This document shows, in pieces, positions 11,701-52,323 of a stretch of 64,000 nucleotides of DNA. Below the pieces are notes generated by a model. The model had not been told where the DNA came from, made no database searches, and was given only the letters and a program-made list of their open reading frames with translations. Numbering within the stretch: the stretch's first letter is position 1; the number at the start of each line of letters is the position of its first letter. The DNA is from Orbicella franksi (taxonomy: Eukaryota): assembly GCA_964199315.1 (NCBI GenBank), contig OZ116699.1, positions 26,598,001 to 26,662,000 on the forward strand. The letters are read 5' to 3'. Position numbers and translations under genes: made by a program.

Positions 11701-12386
11701 AACAACATAAGCAGTTGCTGTCATTTTTCTTTGTTATTCCTTTTACTGCTTGGTGTTATTCAGTCTGTTTTCTACTTCTACACGTCTCTATTTTCCTGTT
11801 ATTTCACTGTGACGACTCATACCACACTGGAACTGAAAGTCAATAACATTTCACAAAACCTGCCCTCATACACTTTATAATATGTAATCTTTATCCCTTA
11901 GGAGTAATTTCATTTTTCGTAACTTTTCCTCTCCTTTTGCTACTTTTTGTCTACACTCAGCATTTTCACTGTTTTTTTTTTTTGTTTTTTTTAATTTAAA
12001 TTTGCCTTCTGCCTCTCAAACATAACTTTTAACTTTAAACTTTGGCGCCGACCGCTTTCGTTGCCGTCAATGAAACAAATCCTACTTCAAATAAATAAAT
12101 TTACCTGAAATGTGACCACTAAATTAAATTTCTTACACAGTGACATACCGATTACCATTCAAAGTTCGCCTCGTATACTGTAATCTTGGCGAAAGGAGAG
12201 CTTACATACTCAAGAAATAAAAATCTGATATTATTTAAGATATCCTCGGAGATACCCTTAGCAATGGCAGCATGAATGAATCGGAGCCTGCACGTTTCAG
12301 ACCAGCGTCATCATAAAGAGAAAATGCCGCTAACAACGGATGAAGATGAGCCTTCTGACGTTTACAAAACCGCGTCAAAAGCGTAA
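2714..12386 (+). CDS. Gene A: secreted low-complexity, Ser-Gly/acidic (proteoglycan-like) protein with one ShKT domain, ~1100 aa
   Basis: The exon chain stays in frame with GT-AG sites: 2714-2771 (signal peptide MGFGFLLLIISLVPLSRA), 3612-4367, 4865(or 4862)-5047, 5387-5806, 6101-6226, 6787-6897, 7522-7647, 7953-8255, 8984-9609, 9967-10204, 10536-10751, 11106-11150, and a tentative terminal exon 12301-12386 (DQRHHKEKMPLTTDEDEPSDVYKTASKA*). It explains ORFs 3788, 5416, 5971, 7491, 7766, 8944, 9934 and 10352. The terminal exon is less certain. Confidence 0.75.
6787..6897 (+). CDS. ShKT domain exon of Gene A
   Basis: Symmetric phase-1 exon encoding DQCDDQFDTCPEMAKNDYCTKYPDLMKIQCKKSCKFC. Six Cys with the terminal C-x3-C-x2-C pattern typical of ShKT. 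Confidence 0.9.
7045..7296 (+). mobile_element. Degenerate tRNA-derived SINE
   Basis: tRNA-like head (GGGAGGTCCGGTAGCTTAATGGTTAG...) and a body homologous to the reverse complement of the better-preserved copy at 35891-36180. Confidence 0.65.
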
Positions 12387-12879
12387 CGATTCGGAGAAGT
12401 TCCTTATCCTTCTTATCAACAAACTAGCGATAAAAAGAAAGTTTGCATTTCGCGTTTTGTTTCAAAAGAACAACGCTTCTAACATCAGATTTGCATTTTT
12501 CTAACAACCAATAGGCGATCAGGAAAGCAGCCTGAGAGAGTTAAGAAGTTACTTTCCTGAGGACGAGTAACTATGGGTCGATATGGAGTTAGCCTTAAGG
12601 TGGCTGAGAATAAAAACAAGCTATGCTAGCAATCCCGCCGTCAACGATACAGTATACGACGGACTTGTTTCCACACCAACACAACTTGACGAGATCAACA
12701 GTTTCTTTACATTATCAACACTAACAGTCATATCAAATAAGTGCAAAGAAAGACTACGGGAATAGGAAATAGAACTTACAGTCTCGAAATTATAATGTAA
12801 ATTAATTGTTCATGATTTAACCTTGTTACTTCTCCCTTTTTATAAAGTAAAATAAAGGAAGCGATATTTCCTGAACCCT

Positions 12880-13085
12880 TTTCTTTGAAGTGGCATTTAC
12901 TTTAAGAGCCACTGTCACATGGCTTTTTGCCTCCCTTTGAAAACGAGTTTTGTTATAAAACATTTCATATATGTGAGTGTTACAGGTTCCTTTTCGTGTA
13001 AATCAAACTCATTTTTTATGAAATGTTTTGGACCAAACTTTGGTTTTAAACATAGGCATAACTTAACTTAAAACCGGTTTATTTT
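12880..13085. mobile_element. Degenerate non-autonomous DNA element (MITE-like)
   Basis: Shares blocks (TTTGAAAACGAG, TCAAAC..ATTTT..ATGAAA, GGTTTTAAAC) with the element at 20257-20425. Confidence 0.4.
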
Positions 13086-17828: not shown

Positions 17829-19315
17829 ATGATTTAAGCAATTTTCTTCGTGTTTGTTTCGTCGCATTATCTTTAACATATCAAGAAGGTAAAGCATAGA
17901 GTGGAAAAGAGTTTCTGAGAGTTCCTAGACAATTCACAAAGCCTTCATGCCGATGTGTTTTTCTTCTACATAAATAAACATAAGGGGTATTTTTATTAAA
18001 TGTGGTTATTTATTAAGGGTGCTAAATTAAATGACCTGCTAATTTTAAATTAAAAACAATAACAGTTATTAATATAACGCTTTTAAAATGATTGATGCAT
18101 GATGCTCCTGACTTACTCACAGCATTAGGTTTACTTGCACGTCTCGAGCCACAGCAAGGCAACTCTACTTCCGCTGATTTTAAAAACGCCATCCCCGGAA
18201 GTAGTTTAGGAGTGGTGGTGTCAAATCACAAACCTCTCCCAGGTTCTTTTCCGTTGTCACTACGCAAGATCGTTCCCGGCATGGCTCAGAAGAAGGATGA
18301 ACTGTATAAACAAGTACAAGAAGGTTAGGGCATGTTGACGCACAGACCGACCAACACTCAGAGAGACTTTTTAACTTAGTGTTCATGCAACGATCGTAGC
18401 CGTGTTGAAAAAAAAGCAAATTGGAAATGAGAGAAACCGATTTTATGTATTAAATCTCGATGAAAAATATCTGTAAACATGAAATATCTTAAATCTCGAC
18501 GATAAATGCCATTAGTGGTGTTGGACTGTTGTCAACTGTCATTGACGGGACAGAACGCCTGTTATGAAAGTGGTGTTAGCTTTTACTTTTTAAGGTGTTG
18601 TGCTTTACGGGCATTTTTTCTACTCAACGTTCGGATGCATTGTTCGTTGCATCTATTCGCCACTAAGTTCATTTCAGTTCAAGTAGGAAGAGAAATCCCG
18701 AATTACCCTCTTACAAACAAACCAAGCTGAATTTAGGCCACGTTTCTTAATTTTATAACATCATGTTAATGCCTTCAGACTCAGTGCACAAAATTGTTCA
18801 GTATCGAAAAACCAATTGATGTTCTTTGTCATTATCAATAATATAAGTCAGGACTTGTACATTAATTGTTAATGGATTTTTTGGATGCTATATATCTCAT
18901 CCATAAAGAAAATCTACCTATAACAGAAGTAAAAGTCTCTCTGAGTTGCAATCTAAATGACGTCGACTTGACTGTTTACTGTACTCTGATAATACATGTT
19001 ACAAACCCGCTTCAGCCGAAAATAAGCAAATGGGATTTCTTTAACTTCAGTCGCAGTAATTGCGAGGATTTTTTAAGACGGATTCCAATACACGCGCCGA
19101 AGGTGAGAGTTAACGGGCTTAATTAAAGACCACCCACTGTGCTGTCGAAATATATTTCAAATATAAACGAAAAAAAACGACGAACTAGTCAATAAAGCAT
19201 TTGTCCATGCGTCGAGAGAAATCTTCACTTCATCTGAGAAAAGCTTCTCAGAGGTTACAGATCAGAGGGAATATCCTCTTTGCTTATTTTCTTTGTTTTT
19301 TGGTTTTGATTTAGT

Positions 19316-19351
<36 letters not shown>

Positions 19352-25300: not shown

Positions 25301-28300
25301 TTGGAAACAGGCAGCCGCTCCAAGTTCGGGTTCCTACTCCTGGTCCATCGGTCGGAGTTGGAAGATTCACTGGATCTGCTGTTCAATTTAACCCAACGTT
25401 AAATAACCTAACTAACACTGGGAATCCCCGAATTAATTCACTTAAATCAACTGACGTGTCCCAGACTCCTAGAACTGGGACTAATTCAATAATTAATAGT
25501 TATAATACAGTCCCGGTCAAGCCCCAGGAACCAATTTTACCCTATTTAACAAATGTAAATCCACCAAAGGATAACGATGAGTTCCAAAGACAGCGTCTGG
25601 CGCCTAATCAGATAGCTAACGAATTGACATCAAATGTAAACCTACAAACGCAAAGCCTGAGGTTTAATCAAGCAGCAGCTAAACCAAACAGTAATGGACT
25701 TTCCCAGATACAGAATCTGGGTCTTAACGTGGTTGCTAATCAACCTAGAAACGGTACAGAATTTGATGATGGTAATCCAGTAACTAGCCAACCTCCATAT
25801 AACAGTGAGTTTAACTTACCTAACTTTCCTTCTCCTAACCAGCAGTATGTTAACCCATATCTTAACCCAGGTGAAATGATACAGAGCTACGTTGGTAAAC
25901 CTCCCTTGACTCCCCCTCTTGAGCATGCGTACCCTATGAGTCATGAGCATGAGGCTCTTCTTCCGCCATTAAATCACCAGCAACTTCCGCCTCTCAACCA
26001 CAATGACTTGGTAGCTACCGAAACCTCCAGGTATACCGGAAGTGACGTTAATGCATTCCCGAACCAAGGTAAGAATTAATTTTATCATGACCAATCAAGA
26101 TGGCAGAGTTCGATGCATTAATTCCTTTTTAACCATTTAACCGATGCTGGAATGCTTTGTTGTCATTCTTAAATGAAATAAGTTGTTGTTGCTGCCAATG
26201 TGGCCCAAGTTGTGTCTCGCGAAGTTGTTATGTCTCGTGTAATGGGTTAACATGTCAATGCTATGGGGAAAATATTATCACTAAACTCTTGGAGAAATAA
26301 TGCAGTGATATCATAATGTGTAAGATAATGTTGTTTAACAGGAGTATGTCACAATAACAACAAATCACTAAAACAGCATCAGCTTAGGACTTATTCCAAA
26401 AGAGAGCATTTACCAAGTGCAGAAAGTTGCTACTAACCTCCCGTTAAGAGCCAATCAATCCAGGTTTTATAGTTATCTGAACGTTTTAAAAATGGTAGAC
26501 ATGAACGACAAACGTCATTTAACCGAACAAGACATTTCACACGATAACCTTTTGAAAACAGGTCAAGCAAGGTCCAATCCTGCGCCACCAATATATCCCT
26601 TCACCATCCCCCCTGAAGGACAGCAGGAGAACCAAGGTTACCATGGTTACCAAGGAAGCGAAAACAACAACGATGCCATAAAGGTACTTTGTCATTGTTA
26701 CTTGTGTAGACCTCACATTTTATGTTGATATATAATTAGTTAGTTTGTTTTCTAATCATTTGTAGTTTGAAACAAATACGTTCATTTTTAAGCCTAACCC
26801 TTTTTCAGTGTCTCAGGCCTCCATTTCAGACGCCTCTATTCTCAAACGAGGAAGGAATCGTGCTTTATCTATTTTTATTTTTTTAACTGGAAAGCTATCA
26901 TTTAACAACAAGAATCCATACCGTTATCACATAACTAGGTAACATTAACTCGTTGTTTCTTATTTTTCATCAAGACTAGTTCCCAGGCCTCTGCTCGAGG
27001 ATCTCTGCCATCAGCACAGTCTCCCTATTATCCACTCCCTAAATCAGCTAACCAGCAACAGGTATGATAACGGTGGAAAAATAATTGCTTAAGGAGACTG
27101 GGGCGGTGGAAAGAGGGGAACAAGAGGAGTATTAGACCACAAATTAAGGAATAACATTTAACTTAATCTGTAAATTAGACTAACAGGAAATCACACTATT
27201 GTGTATCTTTAAACTCCAAATTTAATCAGCTTGTTTTGGGTTGATTTGCCTCCTGAATGTTATAAGCAACCAAATACTAACCCTGTCTATAGAAAAATAG
27301 ATTAAATAATGTTCAGTGACATTCATAACAATAATTTGTTTTAATAGACTATTTTACAGTTGTCTGCTCAGTGACCTGGCCTTTGTATGGCAGCGAGGCT
27401 AGAGTTGACCTTGTTTTGATACAGACCTCACTGCTTTTGTCATGTAAATGCACCTAGTTAGCATCAGAACGACTTGTTTTGCACAACAAAAGCAGTGATG
27501 TCTGTATCAAAACAAGGTCAACTCTAGCCTCGCTGCCATACAAAGGCCAGGTCACCGAGCAGACAACTGTAAAATGGTCTATTCTTTGAAGTAAATGTCG
27601 ACTTTCTCATAATCACAATCACAATCATAATCATAAGCATAACCATAACCATAACCATAACCATAACCATAAGCCTAATCATAATCATAATCATAATCGT
27701 AATCATAATCGTAACATTATCCACTACAATCAGTCAACCCTTTTTATCAAAAAGTGGTGTAAAGTTTACGTTGAGGTTTACTCTCCTCCGCGCGAAACTA
27801 CGTCAAGAAACACGGTTATGTAAAGAACCATGTGCTCTTATATGATTTTTTATTCGAATTTGGTTTCTGGAGGTTTCAGCGTTCTTGGCGATTCTATTTC
27901 TGCGCATCAAAGAGCATTCTGATAGTGTAATCTGTATTGGGAATGGTATTAAATTACTGTGATGTCAACAGCCTGCGGTTACTCGTCAATGGTTTCCAGA
28001 GGGCGGACAACCTTATCCAATCCCATTGCCACCAGAAGGAATTCAGCACGTTCCAATAGACACAGACGACACTGTAAGATCAACTTAAAAACAATCTTAG
28101 TTTTAGAGCGTAAAGGCACACCAAGAGTCTTCAAAAACAAGAAATCGTTTGGGATAGACTACCACTGTTTTTGTAAAAGCAGTAGTTTTCCTTTCCTATT
28201 TCGTAAGAGACTATCATTGAACCAATTCGTTTAGTCGTTTGAGAACTAAGCAGTGGACGAACAGTCCCACCTGCTACTGATGGTACTCTAAGCCATCGAA

Positions 28301-31300
28301 ACAACGCGATTCGTTGATCCAATTATATCGGCAATTTTACCACGTTGTTATGCACCAATCAAATCGAAATATCAATATCCCTCCCTCGGAAATCTACTTG
28401 TCGACTTTTTGACACGTATAGCGTTCATTTTCCTTAAATGCCAACGTTGCATGAGATTCAACTGTATTGCTAGCATTGTTAACAATGAATGACGTTCTAC
28501 CAGCGTGCACGTACATGAACTAAACTTCTTGCGTCTCCTTCTCCTCGTCCTCTATCTTCTTCCTAAGAATTCTTCTTCTTGGTTTTCTTCTTCTTTAGCC
28601 TAAATGAGAAAGCTGCATAAATGTTACTTGTGTAAAGCAAATTTACCTTGCAAGATGTATTTGATTAGTTTCGTATTTTTCAACCGTGACAATAATTTGA
28701 TACGGTGATTTGATAAGGTTCCTCAGTCCTTCTACTACAGTACCCATGAAATTAACAGTCACAGTGTCTTTGAAATGTAAACTTTAAAATCCACCTATAT
28801 AAAAGTCGCGCTGTACCTGAAATTCATAGAATAAACTCAAAGTGTTTTGAACAACAGGAAAAGAAACAGAAACTGCCTTTACTTAGACAGTGCAAATTTG
28901 TTCTGCTGAGTTTTGCTACTGAGGTTTTACCAATGTAGTTATCTAATTTCCAACGTTTCCGACTTTCTGGGCACTGGAGAAAGTATGAGATCAAATTCCC
29001 ACAAGATGTCGGGTGGAATACTGATTTTTCGATTTGATTAAATGGTAACAATGAAATTTTAACAAGATCTTATGTTGTAAAAGTTATGCTCGAGTATCAA
29101 AAACTTAATCGACTGAAGGTGAGTGCTTAAAGACGAACTAAGCTCAGCTTGTATCATTTTATTGCCGCAATGGCATGCAGCCGATTGACAGCCAGTTGTT
29201 GGAGGATCCAAGCCCGTTCCCGTTGCCAATAGGATGGAAGAGAGGAGAAAACAATAAACCTGTAAGATCATAAACGTTAAGCAGTTGATTTAGAGAGTGT
29301 TATAATGAGTCATCCTGTCGAGCCTAAGACAAAAATAGGACTATTTAAAAGAGTGCGTTAAAACGTCCCAAAATCGTCTTTATCTCTAAACAGTTCACGT
29401 CATACATATCGCTCACTTCATGCACGTTACAAGGAATTGTACCATGCACCATTCCCTACCACGTCTATCGAGGTCATGTACATCTTGTTGCATATAAATG
29501 AGCTAAACTTCTTATCACGTCATGTCAAACACATCAAGGTGTCAAACTTACATTTATCTTTGTACTATTGTTATTGACTGGTGTTTAAACGTTACCGACA
29601 GAAACCGTGTGATAATGGTGATAACTGGTGTCCTTACCCGTGGTACCCAGTACCACTGCCACCAGAGGGACAGCAGAGCGATCCAATCAACCAAAGGACT
29701 CAAACAAACCCCAATCCAACTAACAACATTGGCAAAAAGAACTTAATTCGACCTAAACCAGGTAGGTCATGAGTATGGAGCCAAAGTTTCTTTGACGGTC
29801 AATTCAATAGCTGTTACCACTATAATCAATGTTCCATAAGGCTGGCACCAACTTTCAAACGCCGTCATTTTTGAATAAAAATAGCTGTGGTATCAGGTCT
29901 ATGCAGCTGCAGGAAAAGTGTTTTGTAAGTGAAGTTCATTTTACAGAAGGTGAAATAAGGCTGCTCAACCCGATATAGCATTGATATAACATTTTCAAAA
30001 AATGACTACGACATGAAAAATGTTTGTTGAGAAAATGCTGTCCAAAAAATTTTCAACAGCAAGGAATTTGAAACGTGATAAGACTATTTCTTCCATACAG
30101 CCGAAAATTAAAGGCCCCTTTGGTATGTTTCTGAGAGAAGGATGGCATGTCCCCTATAAGTAGAGGGCTTTCCCTCGGGTATTTGTATTATTTATTTGAC
30201 ACGTAAATACGAGTTATCTGCCTTTCTATCTTTCCTCAAGAAAGTGAGATGTTTGATATTCCAAACACTAGATATGTTTTCAAAGGATATGTAAGCGAGA
30301 ATTGCGTGTTGTTTTTACTGCAGACCTTCAATGCGGCGCCGGTTGGACTGGAGCTCTCGGTGACTTTGGTTCATTTTGTTACAAGGAGATTTTTGAACAT
30401 AAAACATGGGACAACGCTCATCACACATGCAAAGGTCTTGGCGGTGATCTTTTCAGCGTGACTAACGCCTATGAACAACGTTTTCTTGAAAACTTCACCA
30501 ATATTGAATCTTGGTTGGGATATCGGGACAAATCCCGGGACGGGACGTGGACTTGGAGTGACTCAAGTCTGTCCGTGTTTACCGACTGGGACAGCAGTGC
30601 TAAGGACGATCACGGCAAAGGTCGAGACTGTGTCTTGCTAAGTTCTAAAGAAGGCAAATGGAAAGATGCATCATGTTCACAGACTCACGAATACCTTTGC
30701 AAGAAAAAGGCCGAAGGTAAGAATATTTTGTAGACTGTAATATTAATCACAATTTATTTACTGTGAAATGCTCTTTAAGACCTAGTTCACACTGATGACA
30801 TAACGACAGAATCGCTCATGTCGGTAATGTGAACATCGACATAAAGATATTCTTTTTTCCTCATGTCGTTATGTTCATGGTGCTATGTAGCTATCATGCT
30901 ATTATGCCAGGATGTTCACACTGCAAACACAACAACATAATGCCCTTCCTATGTCGTTATGTTGCCAGTGCTAGGCTTTTAAGCAATTATTCCCTCGACA
31001 AAAGAACATTTACGTAGTCAGTTCAACAGAAATAAGGAGGCCATCGACGTTCACCAACTGCTTCGATCCATTTGAACTTGACACCAACACCTAAATTACT
31101 TACGCTACAAGTTTCAACCTTCACAATTGCTGATGCTGTTTAAGGTACGTTTATACATTTTGCAAAGTCTTAGTCCTGATTACAGTACTTATAGTTTTTA
31201 TGAAATTTAGATTGCAATAAAGGCTGGAAGAAGCTGACCCTTAACTCAGTCCGCGGATGTTATAAATTATTCAAAGAACCAAAAACGTGGGAGCATGCGC

Positions 31301-40300: not shown

Positions 40301-43300
40301 CTCTCCGATTATAACTGTTTGATGCAAACTGGCATAAAATGTATGCTGCGAGGGACTGGTATCAAGGGGGATAGCAATCTCCGCTTTATGATTAGTTTTG
40401 ATGCAAAAACCGGAAGGTTCAATCCCAGAATTTCTGAGCATCTGGTTCTCATTACAGAAAGACAGTTTCGTATTATAAAATAACAAATCTGCAAAACAAA
40501 ACCTGATCTGACTCAGTTATGTTTGAAGCTGTTCGATTCTGCAGGAGGTAAGGAAGGAAATTATTTTCCTTTTTCGCTTTTCATTTTGTGACTAAAATCA
40601 AAAGCTTTGTAGGTCAACCAAACTTAATTCGTCATGTATGTCTTTTCCTTCATATTCAGGAGCTTATAAAACCAATTGTGCTGAAATTAGAGATTTTAAT
40701 GACTAAACTGAAAGGATTTTTTAAGTTTAATACATCGGAAGGAGAAAGTTAGAAATAACAAACAGTAATGCCTGCATAATTAGTTCGATTAATTCAGTAA
40801 CTATGGTAACGGTATCTTACAAGCTACCGTAATTTCTTATCTAATCCACTCGTCCACTTTGTGTCTTCCCACGCACGATCAACAAACAAATTAGACGAAA
40901 GACTCGTATATCTGAAAGGCTCCTTCTACAATATCAAAATTGATCTCATTCTGTAAAGAAAAGAAGAAATCTTTTTTGCTGTAAGAGAACCAGTTCAGGG
41001 TCTCTCAGTCATAAAACCAAAATGATCTTTAAATTTAAAAAAAAAAAATGCGCACTTAACAAAAAATGATAAGACTTTTACTATCTATAAATTAAAAGAG
41101 CTTTTATTTTAGTTTTTGCTGAAATGGCTTCACATTTATCAGTGCACAGTTCATTAAAAGCGACTTGAATGTCCAAATTTCAAATACGTTTGCTCTGAGA
41201 ATGAAAGAAAAACAAACGTTTTGATCGAAAAGGAAACTGCAGGTCTAAAAATATGTTCTCTCGCCAACAAAAATAATTGACAATCCTCTTCACAAAAATA
41301 AAAATATCACGACTGTGTCAATTTTGTTTGCTTGCAAACAATGAACGCTGTGAAAGATATTGGCACACAGGTCAATATGCCTAAATATCGCCTTTTGGCT
41401 TTGAAATTTATGGAACTACAAAAAAACACCGTTTGAGTGAATGTTAATTAGGTATTCTATGTGCCACAAAGATGTGATGGCGAGCTGTTGTTTCTATTTT
41501 TACGGAAGTTGATCACAATGTTTTTCTAATCCTGTTTTTGTCCGACCACCTCGTAAACGATATAGGTACGAAACAAACTTAGAATCGCATCTCCGCTAAA
41601 ACTTCAAACGAAAACCGCTAAACCGTAATTATTAGTGTTTTAGTTTTCCTTTTTGATTTTAAGCAGTTTCCTTAGCGTCACTTCGTCTTTGAACATGAAA
41701 CCAAAAAACCTTGAATGGTTATTTCTTTTACTCGAACAGATATTTTCCAAAATACTATGTACTCCCGTCTGGCGGGAAATGGATTTCTGCCCAATTTTGC
41801 TATAATGTGATCACAAAAAGCATTTGTTCTGCCGCCTTTTCGTTAAGATTAATTGATTCACAATGGAAACACATTTGAAAATATCCTGCAGTGGAAACAC
41901 AATGTAAGTCCATTAAATTTGCGTTTTCGTGATTATGTATTTTTCTCCGGTTGTGCATGTTTTTTTTTCTAATACACAACACAAGCACCTGCAATGGCAT
42001 ATTTCTAAATTTGCATATCGAGGAGGATAAAGAGTTATTTCCTTTCGCTTCAATTAGTTTTGTTCCTCGAATTAAAAAAAAAATAGTACAACTCTTGGAA
42101 TTTTCTTCGAAAAATGCAGGACTACCAGGCGATCAGTGTGAAGAAACAGAATAGCAAAATTCTGTTAAATCTCACTGTCATTTAACTTTGTCTTCAAGGT
42201 TCTGTAGTGTTCGTCCCGTGCATTATTCACGTTTCCGTTGAAACGATATCCCAAAATTCAATCGAAATGACTGAACGCCAAATCTGAGAACATTCAGTCA
42301 AGTCAAATTCAGATTCAGCTGAAAGAAACTAAATTTCAGAACCTAAATTTCAGGTGAATTCAATGTTACGTAATGCAATGTAATCTTGAGGATCTATGCA
42401 ACAATTTTGAATTAGTGACTTGTATCGCGAGCGTCCTGGATCTTCTGTATTTCTCCATCACTTGCTAAGGAGTAGAAGGAGGTGTAAAATCGATCTCTGA
42501 AGGCGAACAAGAAGAAAGAATGTCCGGGGGTGGCTGCGTGAGCGTAAGCGCACCACCAATGATTGAATCCAAGGACTCGACACTTAAAGACAGTGACGGT
42601 GATAAAGCAAAAATTGCGTTTTTATCGATAGGTGCGAGTTTCAGTGTAGGATATGTGGCTTGTAGCTCAGGCCTTGATAGTTTCACAGGATGGCTCTTGA
42701 TAGCTTTCCTTGTGTGTCTGGGGAATAGCTCCATAGGGCAAATCCTCAGGCTATTTTCCCGCTGAAAACTTGGTTTATTCTCGCTTATGTTTAGATCGAC
42801 TATCCGTAATGACTGTAAGAGCCTTTGACTGCTTCTCGAGTTAGCGGCAGCTCCAGCAAACTTCACAGTGCCATGAAAGTTGACCTTTTTCGCCGCAAAT
42901 GAGTTAAATGGTGATGTGTTGCTATCAAAATTGTTACTTGAGGAAGTGCAAAGATTAGCATGAGAATAACATCTTTTGCACATGCTGAAGGATTCTCTCT
43001 TAACACTTATACGGGGCAGACGAAATGCCTTCTTTTCTTGCTTTAGGGTTGTCTTGGTTTCTTGCTGACTTCGATCGCGGAAGGACGTTTCTGTTTTTCT
43101 CTGTCTTTCATACTGATAATTATTTGTTATTGCTGGAAAACATTTCTCTTCTTCTTGGCTCGCTCGCGTATAGAACTTTTTCCCTCCTGCGTAACGAGAG
43201 TTGAGTTTCCTTACATCCATATCCATTAGCTTTTCTTCAATAAGAAATTAAAACTGAATCAACATTTCGTGAGAAATATTCATGCTCGATGCGAGTCAAT

Positions 43301-46300
43301 TTTCTTTTCGCATGTGAGCCTGCTGTTATCTCAATGTAGGGACATGTACTGTTTACCTTTTGTTTTTCTTATTTGCTTTCTAGATAAATATAGTTGACAA
43401 ATCTTAAACGTCATTCGTTACCATTTATCACACATGAAAAACCTCGATAAGGACCCAATAGGTTAATGAGATGCTAAGTATGTTTTAGTAGTAAATTTTG
43501 TGACCGTATGCTGAGAAACATGCTTGCTGATATCGCTTGTTACCTAGAAACCAGAATCTGACCTACAAAATAGCATTCATCTGAGAACAAAAGACAAAAA
43601 ATATCAAAAAAAAATAAACTGCAGTATTTACCTTTTCGATTGGCGGCAGAAGTGGGGATTCAAAGCTGCAAAGGTTCTTCAATATGAATTAATCCTTGCA
43701 GCCATTAAATTACAAGTTTGGTTGTTACCGGAGAAAATAGATCATTTCACTCAGAACGAAAAGAGTGGCGCCGTCACATTTCAAGAGAAATGACCCGATC
43801 TGTAATTTACTTAGTGCAGTCTCATGTTTGCTAGCGAATATGTGTTTTCCTTAAGAGAAAGACAATCAGTAAGTCTAGAAAAAGGTTTTCCGAAGAAATA
43901 TCTTAGTAAGTTAAAAACGGTAGTTCTATATTACAACAGAAACGTTAATATTTGTCCATTAAACTGAAATTTCAAAAGTTTTTTTTTAGTTCACGCGAGA
44001 TGAAATTGTATTTGATATCTTTTGCCAAACCTTGCAACGATATTCAGGTAAATATCACTTTGACGAGAATATCATTGATGAGGAGTTTCGAAGATGTGAG
44101 ATGCAAGGGTAATTTGGACCCTTCAGCTGTGCAAACGTCGGCAATTAAGCAATTTCGGCTAGTAAACACCATTTTGTGAAACTGGATAATATTTTGGAAT
44201 ATGCGAAAATGGATTATCATAATTAGTATCGTAATATTTAATGTGAAGAAGCTATCAGATCCACTCATTTTACAAATAATTAGTTCAGTATTGGTTGACG
44301 GGTTACCATGCTATATAGGTCGTCGAAATAGCAATGACTAGGGAATAATATTGGATGTTGTTTTTTCTGAAGATTCCCGGAACAGAAGTCTGAACGTATT
44401 CACCTGAAGAAAGGTAAATATTATTACCTCGAGGCATATCAGAAGGCAGATAAGCTGGCTGACTGTGCATCAGTGGCAGTCGAACTTCCTAGTGGTCATT
44501 TTGAGGGACCAATCAAAAGAGTACATTTGAGCTGGCGGTTACCAGGTGAGTGACAGTAGACTAGGAAGATGAATATCAAGGCATAATCTATCGATCAGGA
44601 AACATCGCAACATATATCGTGCATTATCAATAATGAAAGAAAGAGGAATGATAAACTAAAGGCTATGAATGATATCAAAGAAAAATATTTTGCCAAGATA
44701 AAAGGGGAAAGCGTTAATGCTCTGTTTATGGTGTTCGAAAGATGGATGTCATTTAACCTAAAAAGCTTTCGATTAGTGGACAGTGAATGGTGAGAGAACA
44801 TTTGCACCAGTAATTAAATGCAAACAAAAATCCCTTGACGTTCTCAAATTTCAATACATTTTAAACCAACCTTAAATAAGCCCGGGACAAAGCGGCACGG
44901 GACTTTTTAGATGCGAAAGAATGTAATGTGAATAAAAAGAAATGACCAAACGAAAAACATATTGTGGTGAAAATCGCAGTGTGTAATCTGGTTATTGTAA
45001 GTTCTTATTTATGTGAATAAATGTTTCCGCAGATGGAAGAACTGGTCCTGGGCCATCTTCAGAGGAAGAAGGTTTGTACTCATTTCGCATGTGAGGATGG
45101 CATCTTGTTAAAAATTAAAAAATTAAATCACTTTATTGAGTGTCGAGGTGTTTAGCACTACTGTACTAATTGGGGACACTGAAATAAGCAAACAAATATT
45201 GAAAATTGAACATAAACTTGTTAAAAATCCCAGTTGGTGATAGGCTGACCAGCTGGCTATTTACTAATCGTGGAGTAGTTGAATCTAGCGCCACCAAACA
45301 CAGACCCATCATTCATAAAACCGATCATTTGCTTAATCTGGTGTCAGTTTTCTAGGTATGAAGTAGCTCTGGCCAGGAGATGACGTTGTCAGTCAAAATG
45401 TGTATGATTGTTTGCCACTGGCTCGAACATTTTTCAGTATTCGACACCGTCACGGTTATTCCGAATGATGTGAATATAAAGGATTGAACGACTTCTCGCG
45501 TGGCATTTTTATATATATCATTCAGTCGGACTAATGGAATCGTTATCAAGAGAGCTCTCTTTTTACAAGTCATCTTAGAATTGGACAACCTTACGACACT
45601 AAGAGGAGAGCAATTAAGTGAAAAAAGATAGTAAGAGCTGTCTCAGTGCTGTTTGTCGTTATTTTTGCAGCTATACCCAAGCCAGTTGGTTTGTATCCAC
45701 TAAACAAAGCATTTGGTGCTAAGGATGCAGGACCTAACCACGAAAATGGAGTACTCAGTAATGTGGACCTCAGCACGGGCCCTGATGGTAAGGGTTATTC
45801 TTCAACTTAATTATAGTGTTATTGGTAACAATGGTCCAAGCAGCTGTGACTTTGATGAATGTTTGGTCGTGTTCGATATACACCTGGATTATCCCAAGAG
45901 TAGAACTGTAACAGTTTGAATAAAGATGTGCAGTCCTTTTGAGCAGTACACAAGGCTGCAGCAAGGAAAGGTTTGATACCAACGGACTGTTAGTTACTTC
46001 CAGTGCTGTCTAAGATGTGTTTTCTTGTTGTGAAACTAAACGAGCAAGCTTACTATTGAAAGGTTTTTGCGCTTTTTTAATTTCTTCCATCATTAGGTCA
46101 CATACTGAACCCGAAACTAACGAGCATAAATCGTTGTTTTCTTGATATTTACATAATTGTGTCAAAGGAGCTACGTCACGGTTTGCGTATCTTTGAAATT
46201 TATGCCTCAGTTTTTCAAGTTCGTCGTTTGTAATGAACGAGGATCTTCTCCATCCTTAGCTATCCTTGTTCCTTTATGGTTTACTGTTATATCTTTGGTA

Positions 46301-49300
46301 GTTTTCTTATTTAGTAAACTACTATTTTCAGGTTTCCTTCAATTTAAATGTAATTTTGTGCGAGTCCAAAATAACTCAAAATACTGTGACTGAGCCCCTT
46401 TAAGAGTTCTACTTACTGTTAAACAGTTTAATATGTAACCATTTTCAAAGGCAAAATTTTCAAGAGTTGATATTGACAATACACTCTTCTTGCTGAACAG
46501 ACAATGAAGATGAAGCCTTCGAATTCAAAGGTACGGCAGATTCATTTGTGGAGATTCCCAATGACGGCAAGCTGGACACACAGAACTCCATGACAATCCT
46601 CGCTAACGTCTACCCCACCGGTAGTGGGGGACCCATCTTAAATTACAAAACACATGGTTGGGGAGTCCATCTTTGGCAGTTTGAGTCCACTGAGCTATTT
46701 GTGCGATTTGTGCATCGTAATGGAGTTTTCCATAAGCCAATTGCGTCGAGGGTGTTACAGGTACGCGGTCGCAATCTTGCATCTTTCCACAATTTGGGGA
46801 TACTGCAGGGTCACTTTTCTTTCCCTGAAGTTCTTTACGCGTATAAAGTTTTTGAAGCTCAGAGTGCTAAAGGGCCAAGACCATGAGTAAATCTCTAGTC
46901 TCAAAAAAGTGCACAGGCAGTTGTTTTATTATTATTTCAAAAAACTGATTAGGATTAATTTCGATTCCTGATGGCTGCGATGAAAAGAGAAGTTACAAGA
47001 CCTGAGATGCTACAAAATGATTCGTAAAAGCTCGTAACCAGCTGCGCAATGAAGCACATAATTTCTTCCCGGTCTTAAGAAAAAAAAAGAGTTTAAGAAT
47101 GTCTTCGTTTCAGGAGCTTTGTTTAAAGATGTCAAACAATCATAAGCGCAAAATGAACCTGATATGCATACACAGTAACAAAAACCGCTGATAAGATGAC
47201 TAATGATAAATATATTGCCTCTGCGACTCTACGTTTATAAATTGCGTTTATATGCTTTTTCTCTACTGTGAACGCAAGAGACATGCTGAATGAGATCTTT
47301 TGTTTTTTCCTACAAGCTGAACGAGTGGAATCAGGTCGGTGCAACATACGACAACACTACTGGTGTAGCGCAACTTTGGCACAATGGTAAGATGGTAAAG
47401 AGTCGTAATATCGGTCAGATTAAACTTGCTACCCAGTATCCAATCAGGATCGGTGCCAGGGATGGAGACGAGAGGAGGTTCACTGGAAAGATTTCATGCT
47501 TACAAATTTACAACAAAGCATTGGACGAGCAACAGATTGGAAACCTTAAGAGTTGTCCTGTCAAAGGTATGACACCCATAACTTTACTCATTTGTCATTA
47601 AGACAGCTAAATGTTTGGAAAAGGTAGTACCTAAAAAGCTTTATGTACAAGAAATTCTTGCGACTTTTTGATCCCGAATGAGCGTGAAAGCTGAGAGTGA
47701 AGAATAATGAGAGAAGCAGGCTATGATCAAATTTAAGATAAGATTAGAAGTTTTCCCCTTTTTTCAATGTTGGAGCAGCCATTTTTTTCCTGCAAGAACT
47801 GCTGTAATCTCCATCATGATGTACCTATAAATTAATCGTCTATAACGCCTATATATTTCCCAGGCCAGGATTTTTCTATAATCCAACCAAGAATAATCCT
47901 TACAACGATTTTAATTAATCCTACTAATAAGCTTGAAATTCAACGCCAAATAACACAGAACATTTGTTTTTTGTTTCCGCACGCAGCAAAGATCTTAAAT
48001 GATGACGAGCTGGACTCGGGTGATGGCTCAGCCTCAGGAGACTGGGACGTTCATGATTTAGATTGTGAGTTAATTTCCTGTATAATGCATAAACAGACAT
48101 TCTTATCTCGCCTCTCGTTTCAGTGACGTCGTTGTTCTTTTTTGAGCGTTCCTCATTACCTAAACCGTTGGTGCGTCTAAAAGACCAACCTGGAACTAGA
48201 CAACAGTTAATTCCGGGCCGAAAACGTGACAACATGACTTTAATACGCCGTTATGTTGTCACGTAAAAAACCACCATTATACAGCTCTCCAAATATTCTT
48301 TCTAATTAATTTGCTGTGAAAAGGTCTTCTGTGGTTTCTCGCTAACCTTTGTCTTGTTAATCCTTTTTGCTAGCCCTTAATAGTTATTTTGGATAGCCCG
48401 TAAGCCCTTTTAACTTTTTGGATTATTTAGTTAAAATTTTGTAGTAAAAGTGGGATATAAAGAAAGTTGTTGTTGTTGTGCAGAATCAATAGCTTCTCAG
48501 TTACATTTTATTTGCAGCAAGTGCCGTGGATATTTCACACAATGCCGGTAAATATGACAAGGACGAAGAGGCTGATGACGAGATTCAGGGTTAGTAACAA
48601 AAGCAATAAAGCAAGGTCGACTGGAAAGATCACTTGGATATATTATTCAAGAGAATAGCTTTCACTACTTTGAGTGATCTTACCACACAAAAAGACTTGT
48701 CTTAAAACATAATTAAACATAATGGCATTAAGTAGCAGAAGACAGATCTAGAGGATACTAGAGGTGGCTTTGGCCTCTAGAGCCACGGACAATTATAGAA
48801 ATGGACTGTCAGGAACGTTACTTAATTTCATCAGTTAGATCAACAGCGAGCCAAGTCTTGAGTCAATGTATATGATATTTTCTCTTAATATGAAATATTT
48901 CATTAACATTTTTTGGCGTTAAGTTATAGCCAGAAATATACATTTACTCGCCAAGATTGAAGCAGGTCATAAAAAGCGAATTTGAAGGAGGGTTTCACTG
49001 GGCAGCGATCTCATCCTTTTAACTACTTGAGAAAGTTGCAAAACTTGCAGGGAGTACTGAAAAACAGCGCACAAGGGCAGTAACTAAGAAGAGACGGACT
49101 GAGTATAACCTACCTCTTCACGAAAGAACCTTATTATACAACATGTAAACTGAGTTAATAACATTCTTTTTATATCTTTACAGGATCAGAGTCCACTTCA
49201 GGTAAGAGTTATCTTAACCGTCTCTAAGACGAGGATCGCAGGAGATTTAAAAGACTCTTGCGCAGAGAGTCAGCCTATCAAAACACCATTAATAGAAAAT

Positions 49301-51936
49301 ACCCAGACAAAAATAAAATTTTGTTTAGACTTAATTATAAATGAGAGTTAAAAAAAATTGCAGGGAACAAGTGCGACCCAGAACCATGTGAAAATGGCGC
49401 CAAGTGCATCCGGGATAATAAGAGGATGGATGGCTACCGATGCAAATGCACTTCTGATTTTACAGGACGGAACTGTCAAGGTAATTGCCTGCATACTTTT
49501 AAATTTTACTGAAAGCATTACAACATTTAAAACCTTGAAAAAGGCGCCCTCTTTTGAATTCTCCAAAAAAGCAGTTTCCTCTCCCCTCCGCTAAAAGAAT
49601 CACGTGCACAACAAGAAAAACATGTCAGATGTTCAGAGAAAATATACCGAAACAAATTTGTGGATCTTCGAATCTTTAATTTTAAAGTGAGTTCCATTGT
49701 AAAGATAAGTAATGAATGGTTGTCCAAAGTGTTAACGTAATTTAACAAGAGTTTGAGTAACCTGGGCAATACCTTTTATTGAGGCGTTCTTTGTAAAAGA
49801 ACGCCTCAATTGCACGCCTGTATTGTAAAGAAGAGCATACAAGTCGTGAGATAATATTATTGAAAGAGGAATACAAACTAAGGTGTTGATTTCGGTGTTT
49901 AATTCCAGTTTCCAAGCCAGATGCTGAGAATCCTATCGTAAAGAAGGCAAAAATTCCTAAACCTGAACTGAAGATCGGAAATGAGGATTATCAAAAGAAT
50001 GCCAGTGCCTTAAATCTGATTGGTGAGTTTTCCATTCCTTTTTTTAAACTTTGAAGTTGGGAAATCCGAGATGGCATTGCGAAATAAAGGTATTTGACTA
50101 TGGAATTTTCGAGGGAACAACAAACGTTGTACACATGCGCAACTGAGGTAACGAGAAAAAAACTGTGGTGAGTCTTCTCTTGCAGATTTTAGGGAAAAAA
50201 CATTGGAAGCCATGTTGCCCCGAAAATGGTCCAACAAGCGAGTTCGAGATGAAACATACCCCTGATTTCTTCTCGATTTTAAAGTCGCTAATTGTGTTTA
50301 TATTTTAGTCAAATAATAGTGAAGTTAATAATGTCAGTAGTATTCTATGTAGTTCTCACAATTCTAGCAAATAAAGATTAATAAAGCCTTTTCTTTAAAT
50401 TCAAACAACAGAAAACCTACCAGAAGAAAAGAAAGAAGACGTGCTCTTACTTTTCCAAAAGGTCGGCTGTTACAAGGACGAGATTGTAAAACATGATCTG
50501 CCGGACAGAGCCACAGTCAAATCCGTCACTCAGGAAGACTGCGTACGATCATGCGCACTGGAAGAAAAAGGATACTCATACTTTGGACTTCAGGACGCTG
50601 ACAAGTGTTTTTGCGGGCATCGCTATGGAAAGTATGGCAAAGCAGATGAGGCTCTCTGTAACATGCCGTGCAAGGGAAATGACAAAGAGAACTGTGGTGG
50701 TAATTCTACAAATATGGTTTACTTCTTTGGTTTAGGTAAGTTTTTATTGCATCAAAAAACTGCGGCGTGGTTAGTCAACCGAAATTAATCTTATAGGGAC
50801 ACCTCCAGGGAGCTTTACCACGAAATAATCCCCAGTTTAAAAAGTGACAATGCCCCATCAATAAGACATAATGGTTTTGCCATTTTTGTTTTCTGAGCCA
50901 GTGATGATGTTCGAGTCATTTTCTGAGTCATTTCAATTTCGAGTTTCCACTCCAGCATGATACAAACTGTTTCATAGTTTTGAAATTTTCTAAGGCTCAC
51001 GTTTTTGCTGGCATGTCGTGTAACCTAACTATTCTATCTTCAGGTACTAATTACACTATAACTACTTCAACTGGTGACATCGATGGAGCTGACACAGACG
51101 CTAAGGTATACATAACCTTATATGGGGAGAAAGGCGATTCGGGATTCAGAAAACTGGACACTAAACATTTTACAAGGGGAAAGTAAGTTGATATCTCGTT
51201 TGAATGACCACAGTACAGAATAATGTGTTCATGTTTTATTGGTCATGCATTTTATATGATGTTGTTTAATCTCTCTTCTTCTTAGAAATGATACAAACAC
51301 TCTCGTATTACCTGACCTCGGTAAGCTGAGGCAAGTTAGAATTCTACACGATAACTCAGGATCAACTCCAAGCTGGTTCCTGGAAAAGGTGCGAGATTAC
51401 ACTTGTGTGGAATTCATAATTTATTCAAGAGGCCATTTCTCTGAAGAAGCAGAGAGCTGTGCTGAGACCAGAAATGCTTTTTGCACCTTCAATAGCCAAT
51501 TTACTCTATGAGACGTGCCTGCGGGGAATCGCGGTAGTTGTATTCATCATCTTAGACTGGATATTTGTTTCGATGAATACAACTACCATGATTCCATGCA
51601 GGCGCGTCTAATAGAGGGAATGGGCGATTGTTTGGATTCGAGCCAGACCACATGAATCTCATTGGTGAATCAAAGCCACGGTCATAGATATTCCAAGAAA
51701 CTAGGATATGATTGAAAAGAACCAGAAGAAAAATCCCCTCGAGTAATAGTGTCCGAACCTTTTCAATGGATCAGTCAGTCAGTTAATGACTTATTCATAC
51801 ACGTAGTGCTAAGGAGCTCGAAAGCTATTTGACAAAATTTCGTGTGCAAAAGGATACTAAACGATGTGTAATAAGAGGGAAAAAATACTAAATACTAAGA
51901 GATTAAATCTAATATGATTTATTTATTTAGTTAGTC

Positions 51937-51973
<37 letters not shown>

Positions 51974-52218
51974 TTCATTTAATTATATAATGTTGTTTAC
52001 AATGAAACCACGATCGAGTGGAAACGAGCAAAAGGTTTTCACGTTTTAAACAGGGATATCCCCTTTCAGGTTCTTCAAACTTCATTTCTCCCCATGTTTT
52101 GCAGGTGACAGTGACAGATGAAAATGGTCGGACGTATGAGTTTCCATGCAAAGAGTGGCTGAGTGAAACACAAGGTGGCGGCAAAACAGAACGACTTCTC
52201 AGACTGCAACGTACATAG
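17829..52218 (+). CDS. Gene B: giant secreted mosaic protein (~2800 aa): low-complexity/LPPLNH repeats - 2x C-type lectin - 2x pentraxin/LamG-like - 2x PA14 - LamG - EGF - WSC - PLAT
   Basis: About 42 phase-compatible GT-AG exons: 17829/31-17888, 18123-18323, 20113-20250, 20836-20934, 22003-22101, 22694-22990, 23604-24611 (alt donor 24560), 24977-26068, 26342-26416?, 26499-26683, 26975-27061, 29602-29761, 30324-30716, 31211-31374, 31824-32034, 32449-32478, 32574-32672, 32958-33166, 33550-33663, 33942-34165, 34547-34629, 35191-35414, 36374-36546, 36774-37024, 37389-37710, 38158-38330, 38837-39041, 39491-39607, 44373-44545, 45033-45071, 45671-45787, 46501-46760, 47317-47566, 47987-48064, 48518-48589, 49184-49201, 49364-49480, 49921-50022, 50412-50735, 51044-51182, 51286-51388, 52105-52218 (TAG). 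AATAAA follows at 52318. The 5' end and the 26.3-26.5 kb region are uncertain. Confidence 0.8.
19318..19372 (+). repeat. (GTT)n / (GTTTT)n microsatellite
   Basis: Read directly from the sequence. Confidence 0.9.
20257..20425. mobile_element. Non-autonomous DNA element (MITE-like) in a Gene B intron
   Basis: Imperfect inverted arms (GTTTGAAAACGAGTC ... GACTGGTTTTGAAAC). A related copy is at 12.9 kb. Confidence 0.5.
21261..21530. mobile_element. Truncated DNA-transposon-like insertion (TTAA-AG start, Kolobok-like)
   Basis: Present after duplicate copy 1 but absent at the equivalent point of copy 2. Begins TTAAAGTGCCTATGAAA; the right end is not recognisable. Confidence 0.35.
22131..22287. mobile_element. 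157-bp insertion with an 8-bp target-site duplication (ATTCTCGC)
   Basis: The empty site in copy 1 reads GAGTATTCTCGCATAATCC. In copy 2, ATTCTCGC flanks the insert at 22123-22130 and 22288-22295. The insert has C-rich ends (..GGGAGTATCCCCCCCCCCCG). Confidence 0.85.
23681..24058 (+). repeat. Coding array of 10 LPPL(N/M/H)H repeats with ~13-aa period
   Basis: Visible in ORF 23495-24712. Two more copies lie at 25960-26001. Confidence 0.95.
27343..27583. mobile_element. Fold-back MITE with ~95-bp terminal inverted repeats
   Basis: AATAGACTATTTTACAGTTGTCTGCTCAGTGACCTGGCC... is mirrored by ...GGCCAGGTCACCGAGCAGACAACTGTAAAATGGTCTATT. Confidence 0.9.
27608..27715 (+). repeat. Compound hexanucleotide microsatellite (CATAAT/CATAAC)n
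   Basis: Read directly from the sequence. It generates the spurious I/M/V-rich ORF 27524-27724. Confidence 0.9.
30324..32034 (+). CDS. Two C-type lectin domains of Gene B (exons 30324-30716; 31211-31374 + 31824-32034)
   Basis: CGAGW..CYK..TWDNAHHTC..WLGY..WTWSD..DW..C..W.D..C..YLC and CNKGW..CYK..TWEHALVAC..FWIGYND..WVWSD..NW..C..WHDEPC..FIC. Confidence 0.9.
30781..30975. mobile_element. Degenerate palindromic MITE
   Basis: CCTAG..ACTGATGACATAACGACA is mirrored by TGTCGTTATGTTGCCAGTGCTAGG. Confidence 0.55.
32958..37024 (+). CDS. Two tandem pentraxin/LamG (ConA-like) domains of Gene B
   Basis: Paralogous exon sets: G(L/V)xL(N/D)G..(W/F)L..G....CL.DP..C..G(F/L)S; Y(V/I)LDS.G..RG(V/L)S; W.....L(T/S)W....GL.LY; IGRK/VGRK. 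The style resembles the N-terminal pentraxin domain of ADGRD1-type proteins. Confidence 0.8.
35891..36180 (-). mobile_element. Near full-length tRNA-derived SINE
   Basis: The reverse complement begins GGAGGCACGGTGGCCTCATGGTTAGTG (A-box-like) and ends ...GGGCCACTTGGCAGGTATGCAGACTTT. Homologous to 7045-7296. Confidence 0.85.
37389..44545 (+). CDS. Two tandem PA14 domains of Gene B
   Basis: Each has G(L/V)IREVW, FDAP...D.DYGSR(V/I).G(Y/F)F.APE(T/S)G.Y.F, GELW(M/L)SS, L..GKYYY and LPSG.F..PI, as in B4GALNT3/4-type PA14 domains. Confidence 0.9.
42465..43226 (-). CDS. Nested antisense gene, 253-aa basic Ser-rich protein of unknown function
   Basis: A 762-nt uninterrupted ORF inside AT-rich Gene B intron 39608-44372. 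There is an in-frame stop 8 codons upstream of the ATG, a pyrimidine-rich acceptor just upstream, and AAAG|GTAAA donor-like sites near 43355 and 43630 (possible spliced 5'UTR). Minus-strand AATAAA near 41105. Confidence 0.7.
   Translation of the reverse strand: MDMDVRKLNSRYAGGKKFYTRASQEEEKCFPAITNNYQYERQRKTETSFRDRSQQETKTTLKQEKKAFRLPRISVKRESFSMCKRCYSHANLCTSSSNNFDSNTSPFNSFAAKKVNFHGTVKFAGAAANSRSSQRLLQSLRIVDLNISENKPSFQRENSLRICPMELFPRHTRKAIKSHPVKLSRPELQATYPTLKLAPIDKNAIFALSPSLSLSVESLDSIIGGALTLTQPPPDILSSCSPSEIDFTPPSTP
45130..45310 (-). mobile_element. 3' fragment of a second SINE family
   Basis: Shares CTAATTGGGGACACTG and AATCCCA..TGGT...GCTGACCAG.TGGCTATTTAC with 59241-59542. Confidence 0.75.
45671..47566 (+). 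CDS. LamG/ConA-like domain of Gene B (exons 45671-45787, 46501-46760, 47317-47566)
   Basis: PVGLYPLN, AFEFKGTADSFVEIPN, MTILANVYP, WNQVGATYD, LWHNG, IRIGA, FTGKISCLQIYNKAL. Confidence 0.85.
49364..49480 (+). CDS. EGF-like domain exon of Gene B
   Basis: Phase 1-1 exon encoding NKCDPEPCENGAKCIRDNKRMDGYRCKCTSDFTGRNCQ. Confidence 0.9.
50412..50735 (+). CDS. WSC domain exon of Gene B
   Basis: VGCYKD..C..SC..GYSYFGLQDADKCFCG..YGKA....CNMPCKGNDKENCGG. Confidence 0.9.
51044..52218 (+). CDS. C-terminal PLAT/LH2 domain of Gene B (3 exons) and stop
   Basis: YTITTSTGDIDGADTDAKVYITLYGEKGDSG; DLGKLRQVRILHDNSGSTPSWFLEKV; YEFPCKEWL. Confidence 0.9.
51491..51630. mobile_element. Small palindromic MITE
   Basis: GGTAGTTGTATTCATC is mirrored by GATGAATACAACTACC, with weaker outer arms. 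Confidence 0.7.
51928..51974 (+). repeat. (TTAG)n microsatellite
   Basis: Read directly from the sequence. Confidence 0.9.
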
Positions 52219-52317
52219 TGCCTATTCTGCATGCCGTTAAGGTAATGACAGGTCACGTGATTCAATGTGGCCTTCAAAACTGCAAAGACGTTGCATAGTA
52301 CAAGCTATGCAATTCGT

Positions 52318-52323
52318 AATAAA
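52318..52323 (+). terminator. Candidate polyadenylation signal of Gene B
   Basis: AATAAA 100 nt after the TAG stop. Confidence 0.55.

Follow-up and report, generated by a model that had tools for sequence, protein, structure and literature searches.

Gene structure and expression

The 64,000-nucleotide (nt) window of the Orbicella franksi genome analysed here (assembly GCA_964199315.1, contig OZ116699.1, positions 26,598,001 to 26,662,000 of the forward strand) is AT-rich animal DNA (GC content 35-46%) and carries on its plus strand a 49.5-kb gene, at window positions 2714-52218, whose predicted product is a secreted mosaic protein of 3,744 amino acids (aa). Between 30 and 52 kb this strand contains short open frames that translate to recognisable extracellular domains. 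Splice junctions were refined by orthologue comparison, splice consensus and reading frame, and the resulting model comprises 54 coding exons, including three micro-exons (exons 13, 42 and 48), with GT-AG boundaries at all introns and no internal stop in the frame. When nine orthologues were mapped onto the window by tblastn, the closest relative, an Oculina protein (P0169, 3,735 aa), was collinear with 2714-52215, the coral and sea-anemone orthologues matched from ~3575 to 52215, and two hydrozoan-type proteins started to match further in. The peptide encoded by exon 42 was identical in the 5 coral orthologues compared and had two positions substituted in Nematostella.

Of the words sampled from 44300-52300, 25-40% were present in fourteen coral RNA runs. 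Two runs of raw reads and two of contigs were aligned on 47300-53299; raw-read run X24 provided 266 reads there, of which 197 were at least 99% alike, and read depth over the exons was 5-13. All 8 splice joints tested between 47.3 and 52.2 kb were present in raw polyA RNA reads and in contigs. The joints found in both X24 and the polyA contig X4 were 47566>47987, 48064>48518, 49480>49909, 50022>50412, 50735>51044, 51182>51286 and 51388>52105, the last of which, located just upstream of the stop codon, was covered by 24 raw reads and one contig. X24 and X4 also carried 14 extra letters between 48590 and 49361 which, together with their flanks, matched 49183-49198, and the 18-nt exon 48 was deduced from them. 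After the TAG codon there are 23 bases followed by a GT donor; 30 reads and a contig exit at 52241, and their onward letters match 54077-54106 exactly. The transcript thus passes 52218 through a 1,835-nt intron of the 3' untranslated region (3'UTR), in untranslated sequence only, and the protein ends a few residues past PLAT. The gene is intact and expressed.

Two further observations concern these reads. Low RNA depth (2-6 reads) at 52300-52900, inside the 3'UTR intron, continues past the donor at 52241 and may come from a minor 3' end left unspliced or from a different transcript. The RNA library was seemingly unstranded, with first mates about equally frequent on both strands.

An earlier reading of this DNA made from the letters alone (the sequence-only reading) had described a continuous frame of ~2,800 aa spanning 17829-52218, which would encode a soluble multi-glycan-binding mosaic. 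The domain types and counts that it gave (two C-type lectin-like domains, or CTLDs, three LamG, two PA14, EGF, WSC and PLAT) were recovered by Pfam on the window exons and in full-length orthologues, and its stop right after PLAT was borne out, the TAG lying in an exon whose upstream joint was confirmed by RNA. The proposed start had to be abandoned, as 17829 reads ATG ATT TAA, a stop after two codons, and the frame assumed to be continuous is actually divided into 41 exons (14-54). These exons give ~2,760 residues, which explains the estimated length; the figure fits this portion but not the whole protein. The claimed mosaic corresponds to the rear two thirds of a gene whose true start lies ~15 kb further upstream. 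What had been taken as a gap between two genes is the 7-kb intron of one collinear gene, with the phase kept. The gene proved larger than proposed, as it also has a signal peptide, a ShK domain and the front half described below; in this model the ShK proteoglycan-like part, the LPPLNH repeats and the lectin mosaic, at first recorded separately, belong to one gene.

Table 1 Features of the gene, in window coordinates. Pfam was run on single window exons; Pfam values are E values.
Feature	Position	Strand	Evidence
Exon 1, start codon and signal peptide	2714-2771	+	86% identical to P0169 residues 1-22; hydrophobic N-terminus in translation
Exon 2, conserved N-terminal island, then first acidic Ser-Gly cluster	3612-3782	+	
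Exon 7, precisely one ShK (ShKT) domain	6787-6897	+	Pfam ShK on 6789-6896, 6.9e-8
Exons 8-9, dense acidic Ser-Gly clusters directly 3' of ShK	7522-7647, 7953-8255	+	Translation
Exon 13, 45-nt Gln-rich micro-exon	11106-11150	+	Placed by Oculina homology
7-kb intron	11151-18128	+	Collinear orthologue mapping; phase 1 kept across
Exon 14	18129-18323	+	92% identical to P0169 residues 969-1033
Exons 15 and 16, 33-residue cassette repeats	20113-20250, 20836-20934	+	
Possible duplicate of exon 16 (candidate exon, would add 33 residues)	22003-22101	+	Splice sites intact
Exons 18 and 19, low complexity, 12 LPPL(N/M/H)H repeats	23610-24611, 24977-26068	+	
CTLD 1 (exon 25)	30324-30716	+	Pfam Lectin_C on 30272-30730, 8.9e-22
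CTLD 2 (exons 26-27)	31211-31374, 31824-32034	+	Pfam Lectin_C on 31204-31437 and 31824-32039, 8.2e-16 for the second half
LamG_3 domain 1 (exons 30-33)	32958-34629	+	Pfam Laminin_G_3 on 33942-34184, 2.3e-7
LamG_3 domain 2 (exons 34-36)	35191-37024	+	tblastn similarity to LamG 1; third Laminin_G_3 stretch of orthologues; beta-sandwich in model
PA14 domain 1 (exons 37-38)	37389-38330	+	Pfam PA14/GLEYA; PA14 on 37325-37711, 2.7e-5
PA14 domain 2 (exons 39-41), split by 4.8-kb intron	38837-39041, 39491-39607, 44373-44545	+	Weak Pfam PA14 on 38812-39042, 0.043
Exon 42, 39-nt micro-exon encoding DGRTGPGPSSEEE	45033-45071	+	Orthologue comparison
LamG_3/pentraxin-like domain 3 (exons 43-45)	45671-47566	+	Pfam Laminin_G_3 on 47290-47598, 1.7e-14; Pentaxin 7.7e-4
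Acidic linker with Ser-Gly motif (exons 46, 47 and 18-nt micro-exon 48)	47987-48064, 48518-48589, 49184-49201	+	RNA
EGF domain (exon 49)	49364-49480	+	Pfam EGF on 49345-49509, 3.1e-8; RNA joint 49480>49909
WSC domain, 8 cysteines (exon 51)	50412-50735	+	Pfam WSC on 50399-50785, 1.2e-18; RNA joints
PLAT domain (exons 52-54)	51044-51182, 51286-51388, 52105-52218	+	Pfam PLAT on 50908-51183, 5.1e-7; 51260-51508, 0.0055; 52006-52215, 5.4e-4; RNA joints
Stop codon TAG	52216-52218	+	Sequence
3'UTR	52219-52241, intron 52242-54076, last exon from 54077	+	Followed to at least ~54184

A pan-cnidarian orthologue group with a highly conserved rear module

Searched against 1.84 billion representative proteins, the first PA14 exon had 5,169 PA14 relatives at E values up to 0.001 and one long relative of high identity, the 3,095-aa protein P0011 of Hydra vulgaris (LOC100203426; 58% identical). 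When the rear 1,636 residues of P0011 were searched in turn, full-coverage relatives came from cnidarians only, and the next matches covered at most 12% of the query. The orthologues comprised, besides the Hydra protein, those of Hydractinia (LOC130655679), Nematostella (LOC5513456), Stylophora (LOC111337536), Pocillopora (LOC113674731), Acropora palmata (LOC141874734), A. muricata and Oculina (LOC144644082), and one EukProt transcript. All are annotated as 'uncharacterized protein', and one source had automatically named the Stylophora orthologue 'C-type mannose receptor 2'. Full-length orthologues with the mosaic ending in PLAT were found in 8 species; Pfam detected in them two Lectin_C, three Laminin_G_3 and two PA14 stretches followed by EGF, WSC and PLAT, with ShK far upstream. 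They share with the window protein the domain order through to PLAT and the same end, but differ from it in the length and repeats of the front half, the hydrozoan versions being richer in lysine. By these alignments the window gene is a member of the pan-cnidarian orthologue group of Hydra LOC100203426, and within the searched databases the gene appears to be restricted to Cnidaria. The sequence-only reading had not recognised the architecture: indeed no characterised family was found for it, but it is not unique to this coral, as it belongs to one gene conserved across the phylum.

The rear module (CTLD-CTLD-LamG-LamG-PA14-PA14-LamG-EGF-WSC-PLAT, 1,636 aa) was 95.5% identical in Oculina, 93.5% in Pocillopora, 93.2% in Stylophora, ~89% in Acropora, 73% in Nematostella and ~52% in Hydractinia and Hydra. 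All 1,636 positions were alignable in every stony coral and 1,635 of them in Nematostella, so that insertions and deletions are nearly absent within Anthozoa, and 597 alignment columns were invariant over nine species. Judged by protein identity, these comparisons showed a rear module under very strong constraint. In the coral's own genome, the PA14 and WSC exons matched only the window itself (50 of 767 candidates scored), and tandem arrays on other contigs contained dozens of single-exon relatives, ~45% identical, of the third LamG.

The arrays deserve separate mention. Their units are LamG_3/pentraxin-like, ~200 aa long and show 40-49% identity to the third LamG; dozens of them are densely arranged in tandem at C12:5.67-5.81 Mb, C12:2.16-2.70 Mb, C3:28.49 Mb and C5:30.2 Mb of G000 (L003, L004), and they make up a large gene family or else giant genes with repeats.

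Binding residues and nearest relatives of the rear domains

Calcium-dependent sugar-binding CTLDs carry EPN or QPD plus WND at calcium site 2. Inspection by eye of a 9-species alignment showed that CTLD 1 reads AKD and WKD at these places, and CTLD 2 SPN and WHD; these residues were largely kept in all nine species, Hydra CTLD 2 reading APT. Similarly, sugar-binding PA14 domains carry a DD pair, and the first PA14 domain appears to lack this pair and the second to have one Asp (by eye, against the Pfam consensus). Since both CTLDs are without the canonical calcium and sugar residues, sugar binding by the rear module seems doubtful.

In sequence searches, the WSC domain was closest to Kremen-1 and the PLAT domain to polycystin-1 (nearest solved match, E 2.7e-10), and a PDB sequence search with the LamG_3 and PA14 parts found no relative. 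The AlphaFold2 model of the LamG-PA14 core, for which 8 orthologues were used, had low confidence scores (predicted local distance difference test, pLDDT, 61.6; predicted template modelling score, pTM, 0.35), and Foldseek with this low-confidence model retrieved only generic LamG/LNS folds and a clostridial HCN jelly-roll.

A variable front half with Ser-Gly clusters

The front ~2,108 aa are fast-evolving and of low complexity, rich in Pro, Gln, Ser and Asn and apparently disordered, and their identity to the orthologues ranged from 82% down to 22%. Almost all the exons of this half are of phase 1-1, so that cassette splicing would be possible without loss of frame; up to 30 numbered RefSeq isoforms exist for the Hydra gene. 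ShK was the sole Pfam match among the front-half exons, and it was also matched in Hydra, Hydractinia, Oculina, Nematostella and Acropora; for Pocillopora and Stylophora, the precomputed Pfam lists contained no ShK. Acidic Ser-Gly sites numbered 19 in the front half, with another cluster between the third LamG and EGF. One cluster directly follows ShK in the window, a comparable one was visible after ShK in Hydra, and many such sites occurred in the front half of every orthologue.

Conserved islands in this otherwise variable half were a short N-terminal stretch that includes a dibasic site, the ShK domain, residues 635-665 and the segment DPFEYVRNM...ASMEPI, and a KKNLIRPKP motif was conserved just upstream of the first CTLD. 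The LPPL(N/M/H)H repeats of the front half were added in Anthozoa: the window and Oculina have 12 each, the other corals 8-10 and Nematostella 10, and hydrozoans have none.

Two side observations were made in the same region. A motif of the form basic-S-x-I-P(-x-P), e.g. KKSHIPLPP, has 7 copies in the window, and the other corals have 5-7 and Hydra and Hydractinia 6-7 of them, although overall identity is ~22%; the exons containing it include 4865-5047, 7953-8255, 8984-9597 and 9967-10204, and its role might lie in processing or in docking. In addition, cassette exon 16 and its splice sites have been copied by a tandem duplication of ~0.83 kb (20429-21261 vs 21584-22600; 756 identities over 829 aligned bases), a recent exon duplication in a low-complexity region.

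Predicted secretion

The window model and 7 orthologues were scanned for hydrophobicity with a 19-residue Kyte-Doolittle window and a mean threshold of 1.6. No segment above the threshold was found in the window model, and in the 7 orthologues the only one was the signal peptide. Pfam detected no GPS, REJ, PKD-channel or 7tm_2 domain in window exons or orthologues. A glycosylphosphatidylinositol (GPI) signal is unlikely because the C-terminus is hydrophilic, and all the orthologues terminate 3-12 residues beyond PLAT. The scans thus showed a protein predicted to be secreted and to have no membrane anchor, in agreement with the earlier suggestion of a secreted multi-domain scaffold with neither a transmembrane nor a GPI-like C-terminus.

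Comparison with known systems

Lecticans (aggrecan, versican, neurocan and brevican) resemble the coral protein in being large and secreted and in having a long disordered acidic Ser-Gly region and a C-terminal globular binding unit with EGF and C-type lectin domains. They differ in several respects. The N-terminal G1 of lecticans (Ig plus two Link domains) has no counterpart in P0169, P0167, P0162 or P0011, where Pfam found no Ig or Xlink. Whereas their G3 is arranged EGF-CTLD-CCP, in the coral protein EGF and CTLD are reversed and ~1,100 residues apart, with no Sushi/CCP match, and two CTLDs are followed by LamG, PA14, WSC and PLAT. Their central region bears chondroitin sulfate chains, while the corresponding attachment at the acidic Ser-Gly clusters of the coral protein is predicted. 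As Ig, Link and CCP are absent, the likeness to lecticans is to be understood as an analogy of layout and not as homology.

The tandem CTLD pair was closest to the mannose-receptor family (FcRY, 1e-67; PLA2R, 1e-54; DEC-205, 5e-54). In this family (MRC1/2, PLA2R, DEC-205 and FcRY) most CTLDs do not bind sugar. Its members have a ricin-type domain, FNII, 8-10 CTLDs, one transmembrane helix and a cytoplasmic tail, whereas the coral protein has two Lectin_C domains and none of the rest. With polycystin-1/REJ proteins it has the CTLD, WSC and PLAT domain types in common, but it lacks their PKD repeats, REJ, GAIN/GPS and eleven transmembrane helices; moreover, PLAT is cytoplasmic (first loop) in polycystin-1 and extracellular and C-terminal here. 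Extracellular terminal PLAT domains have precedents in secreted lipases. Adhesion G protein-coupled receptors (GPCRs) with a pentraxin/LamG ectodomain have GAIN and seven transmembrane helices, in contrast to the coral protein, which has neither a GPS/7tm_2 match nor hydrophobic segments. Bacterial PA14 plus Laminin_G_3 proteins of Bacteroidota and Planctomycetota in the ESM Atlas were language-model neighbours of the LamG-PA14 core (score 0.96), a lead obtained by comparing language-model features; they are ~370-870 aa long and without CTLD, EGF, WSC or PLAT.

A proposed proteoglycan-like scaffold and its alternatives

The reading that we favour, with a probability of roughly 0.55, is that the gene encodes the 3,744-residue coral orthologue of a pan-cnidarian protein that would act as a secreted, proteoglycan-like scaffold of a matrix or surface coat. 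Laid out like a large proteoglycan, it would have in its front half a hydrated, probably glycosaminoglycan-bearing and alternatively spliced spacer, and in its rear module a fixed multi-site binding unit tying this spacer to matrix partners; the terminal PLAT may hold the protein on a lipid or membrane surface, or may bind a partner protein. Candidate matrices would be the surface coat or mucus, the mesoglea and the lumen of the stinging capsule. Among the secreted proteins that corals, sea anemones and hydrozoans share and that seem confined to Cnidaria, it is one of the largest. Core proteins of cnidarian chondroitin are not known, and because it is conserved, predicted to be secreted and equipped with glycosaminoglycan-type sites, the coral protein offers a concrete candidate for a chondroitin core protein. 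Knock-down is routine in both Hydra and Nematostella.

Several points weigh against this proteoglycan-like scaffold. The acidic Ser-Gly clusters are of the glycosaminoglycan-attachment type, with attachment itself a prediction, and the rigid packing of the rear module is deduced from conservation, the multi-domain AlphaFold model being poor. PLAT domains can also bind proteins instead of lipids. The link of exons 1-13 to exons 14-54 (10751>11106>18129) is drawn from orthologue collinearity and frame, and transcript-derived fragments over it, sought with Oculina residues 930-1070, were single-exon pieces only. Neither an expressing cell type nor proteomic detection was found. As regards the literature, no published study of the gene was retrieved with the orthologue LOC, XP, PFX, UniProt and pdam identifiers; the text of the Stylophora cell-atlas supplements contained none of the orthologue identifiers, and no row of the Nematostella matrisome tables could be matched to the protein by the words PA14, PLAT and WSC.

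The sequence-only reading had instead proposed a soluble protein with the role of a multivalent lectin, either to cross-link the glycans of mucus or, as an immune pattern-recognition scaffold, to recognise microbes or symbionts. CTLD, PA14, WSC and LamG folds do bind carbohydrate in some proteins, and the protein is predicted to be secreted, but the motifs of the two CTLDs (AKD/WKD and SPN/WHD) and of the PA14 domains, as read by eye, speak against multi-glycan binding. Recognition receptors usually diversify, whereas the rear module is 52-95% identical with almost no indels, the scored matches of its PA14 and WSC exons all lie in the window, and the gene is present in the non-symbiotic Hydra vulgaris and Nematostella. 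A nearly frozen module, PA14 and WSC exons that are apparently single-copy and non-symbiotic carriers would favour a structural or assembly role over recognition of microbes or symbionts, and we regard a lectin as unlikely. Alternatively, the protein could serve the developing stinging capsule (cnidocyst) as the core protein of its chondroitin matrix, a luminal scaffold with PLAT on the vesicle membrane and sugar chains stabilising the tubule. The attraction of this proposal is that the gene is phylum-restricted: like known capsule genes, it occurs in all cnidarians sampled, and the databases searched gave it for no other phylum; the proposal, if true, would explain this distribution as well as the nearly frozen rear module. 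The glycosaminoglycan-type Ser-Gly clusters and a terminal PLAT on the luminal side would also suit it, and no named core protein was found for the capsule chondroitin matrix. According to PMC10014300 (citing Adamczyk 2010), chondroitin in the growing nematocyst tube stabilises its elongation and is a target of the CTLD protein NOWA. The Hydra cuticle also contains chondroitin, for which no core protein was found (PMC3531485). On the other hand, the main text of the Hydractinia nematocyst proteome contained no matching identifier or domain words, and the gene is expressed at moderate depth in adult coral tissue, which does not discriminate cell types; a capsule core protein seems to us quite improbable.

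The two remaining explanations concern the gene itself. If the locus consisted of two genes, one for a ShK proteoglycan (2.7-11 kb) and one for the mosaic, the full-length models in the databases would have to be prediction fusions; the joint 10751>18129 has no read support (reads were aligned on 47300-53299 only), the intron is 7 kb long, and the two parts had first been recorded as distinct findings. However, independent RefSeq models from 8 species of two cnidarian classes run from the N-terminal part to PLAT, five of them showing ShK, and the reading phase is kept across the intron. In addition, a product beginning at exon 14 would lack a secretion signal despite its disulfide-rich domains, because there is no signal-peptide start near 17829. 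A split into two genes is therefore very improbable. Least credible of all is a fragment of a polycystin-1-like or adhesion-GPCR-like receptor with transmembrane exons downstream, an explanation that the sequence-only reading had rightly discounted. CTLD, WSC and PLAT do co-occur in polycystin-1, whose PLAT is the most similar to that of the coral protein, but an in-frame TAG at 52216 precedes the sole downstream joint (30 reads), every orthologue stops 3-12 residues after PLAT, and GPS, REJ, 7tm_2, PKD-channel and hydrophobic segments are all lacking. That reading had also considered that transcripts might extend past 52218 into transmembrane exons: they do extend past it, but only as untranslated sequence.

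Other features in the window

Two features were noted within introns of the gene. The intron between exons 53 and 54 contains at 51512-51612 a near-perfect hairpin of ~97 nt (RNA fold -61 kcal/mol, z = -11), with RNA contig depths of 405 and 2,399 as compared to 4-1,087 on exons and with many different flanks on both sides. Rfam gave no match in the window, this hairpin included. It looks like a dispersed inverted-repeat element, similar to a miniature inverted-repeat transposable element (MITE), present in many transcripts. On the minus strand, within the 4.8-kb intron that splits the second PA14 domain, an ATG-started open frame of 253 aa (42465-43226), for which Pfam gave no match, may be a transposon remnant.

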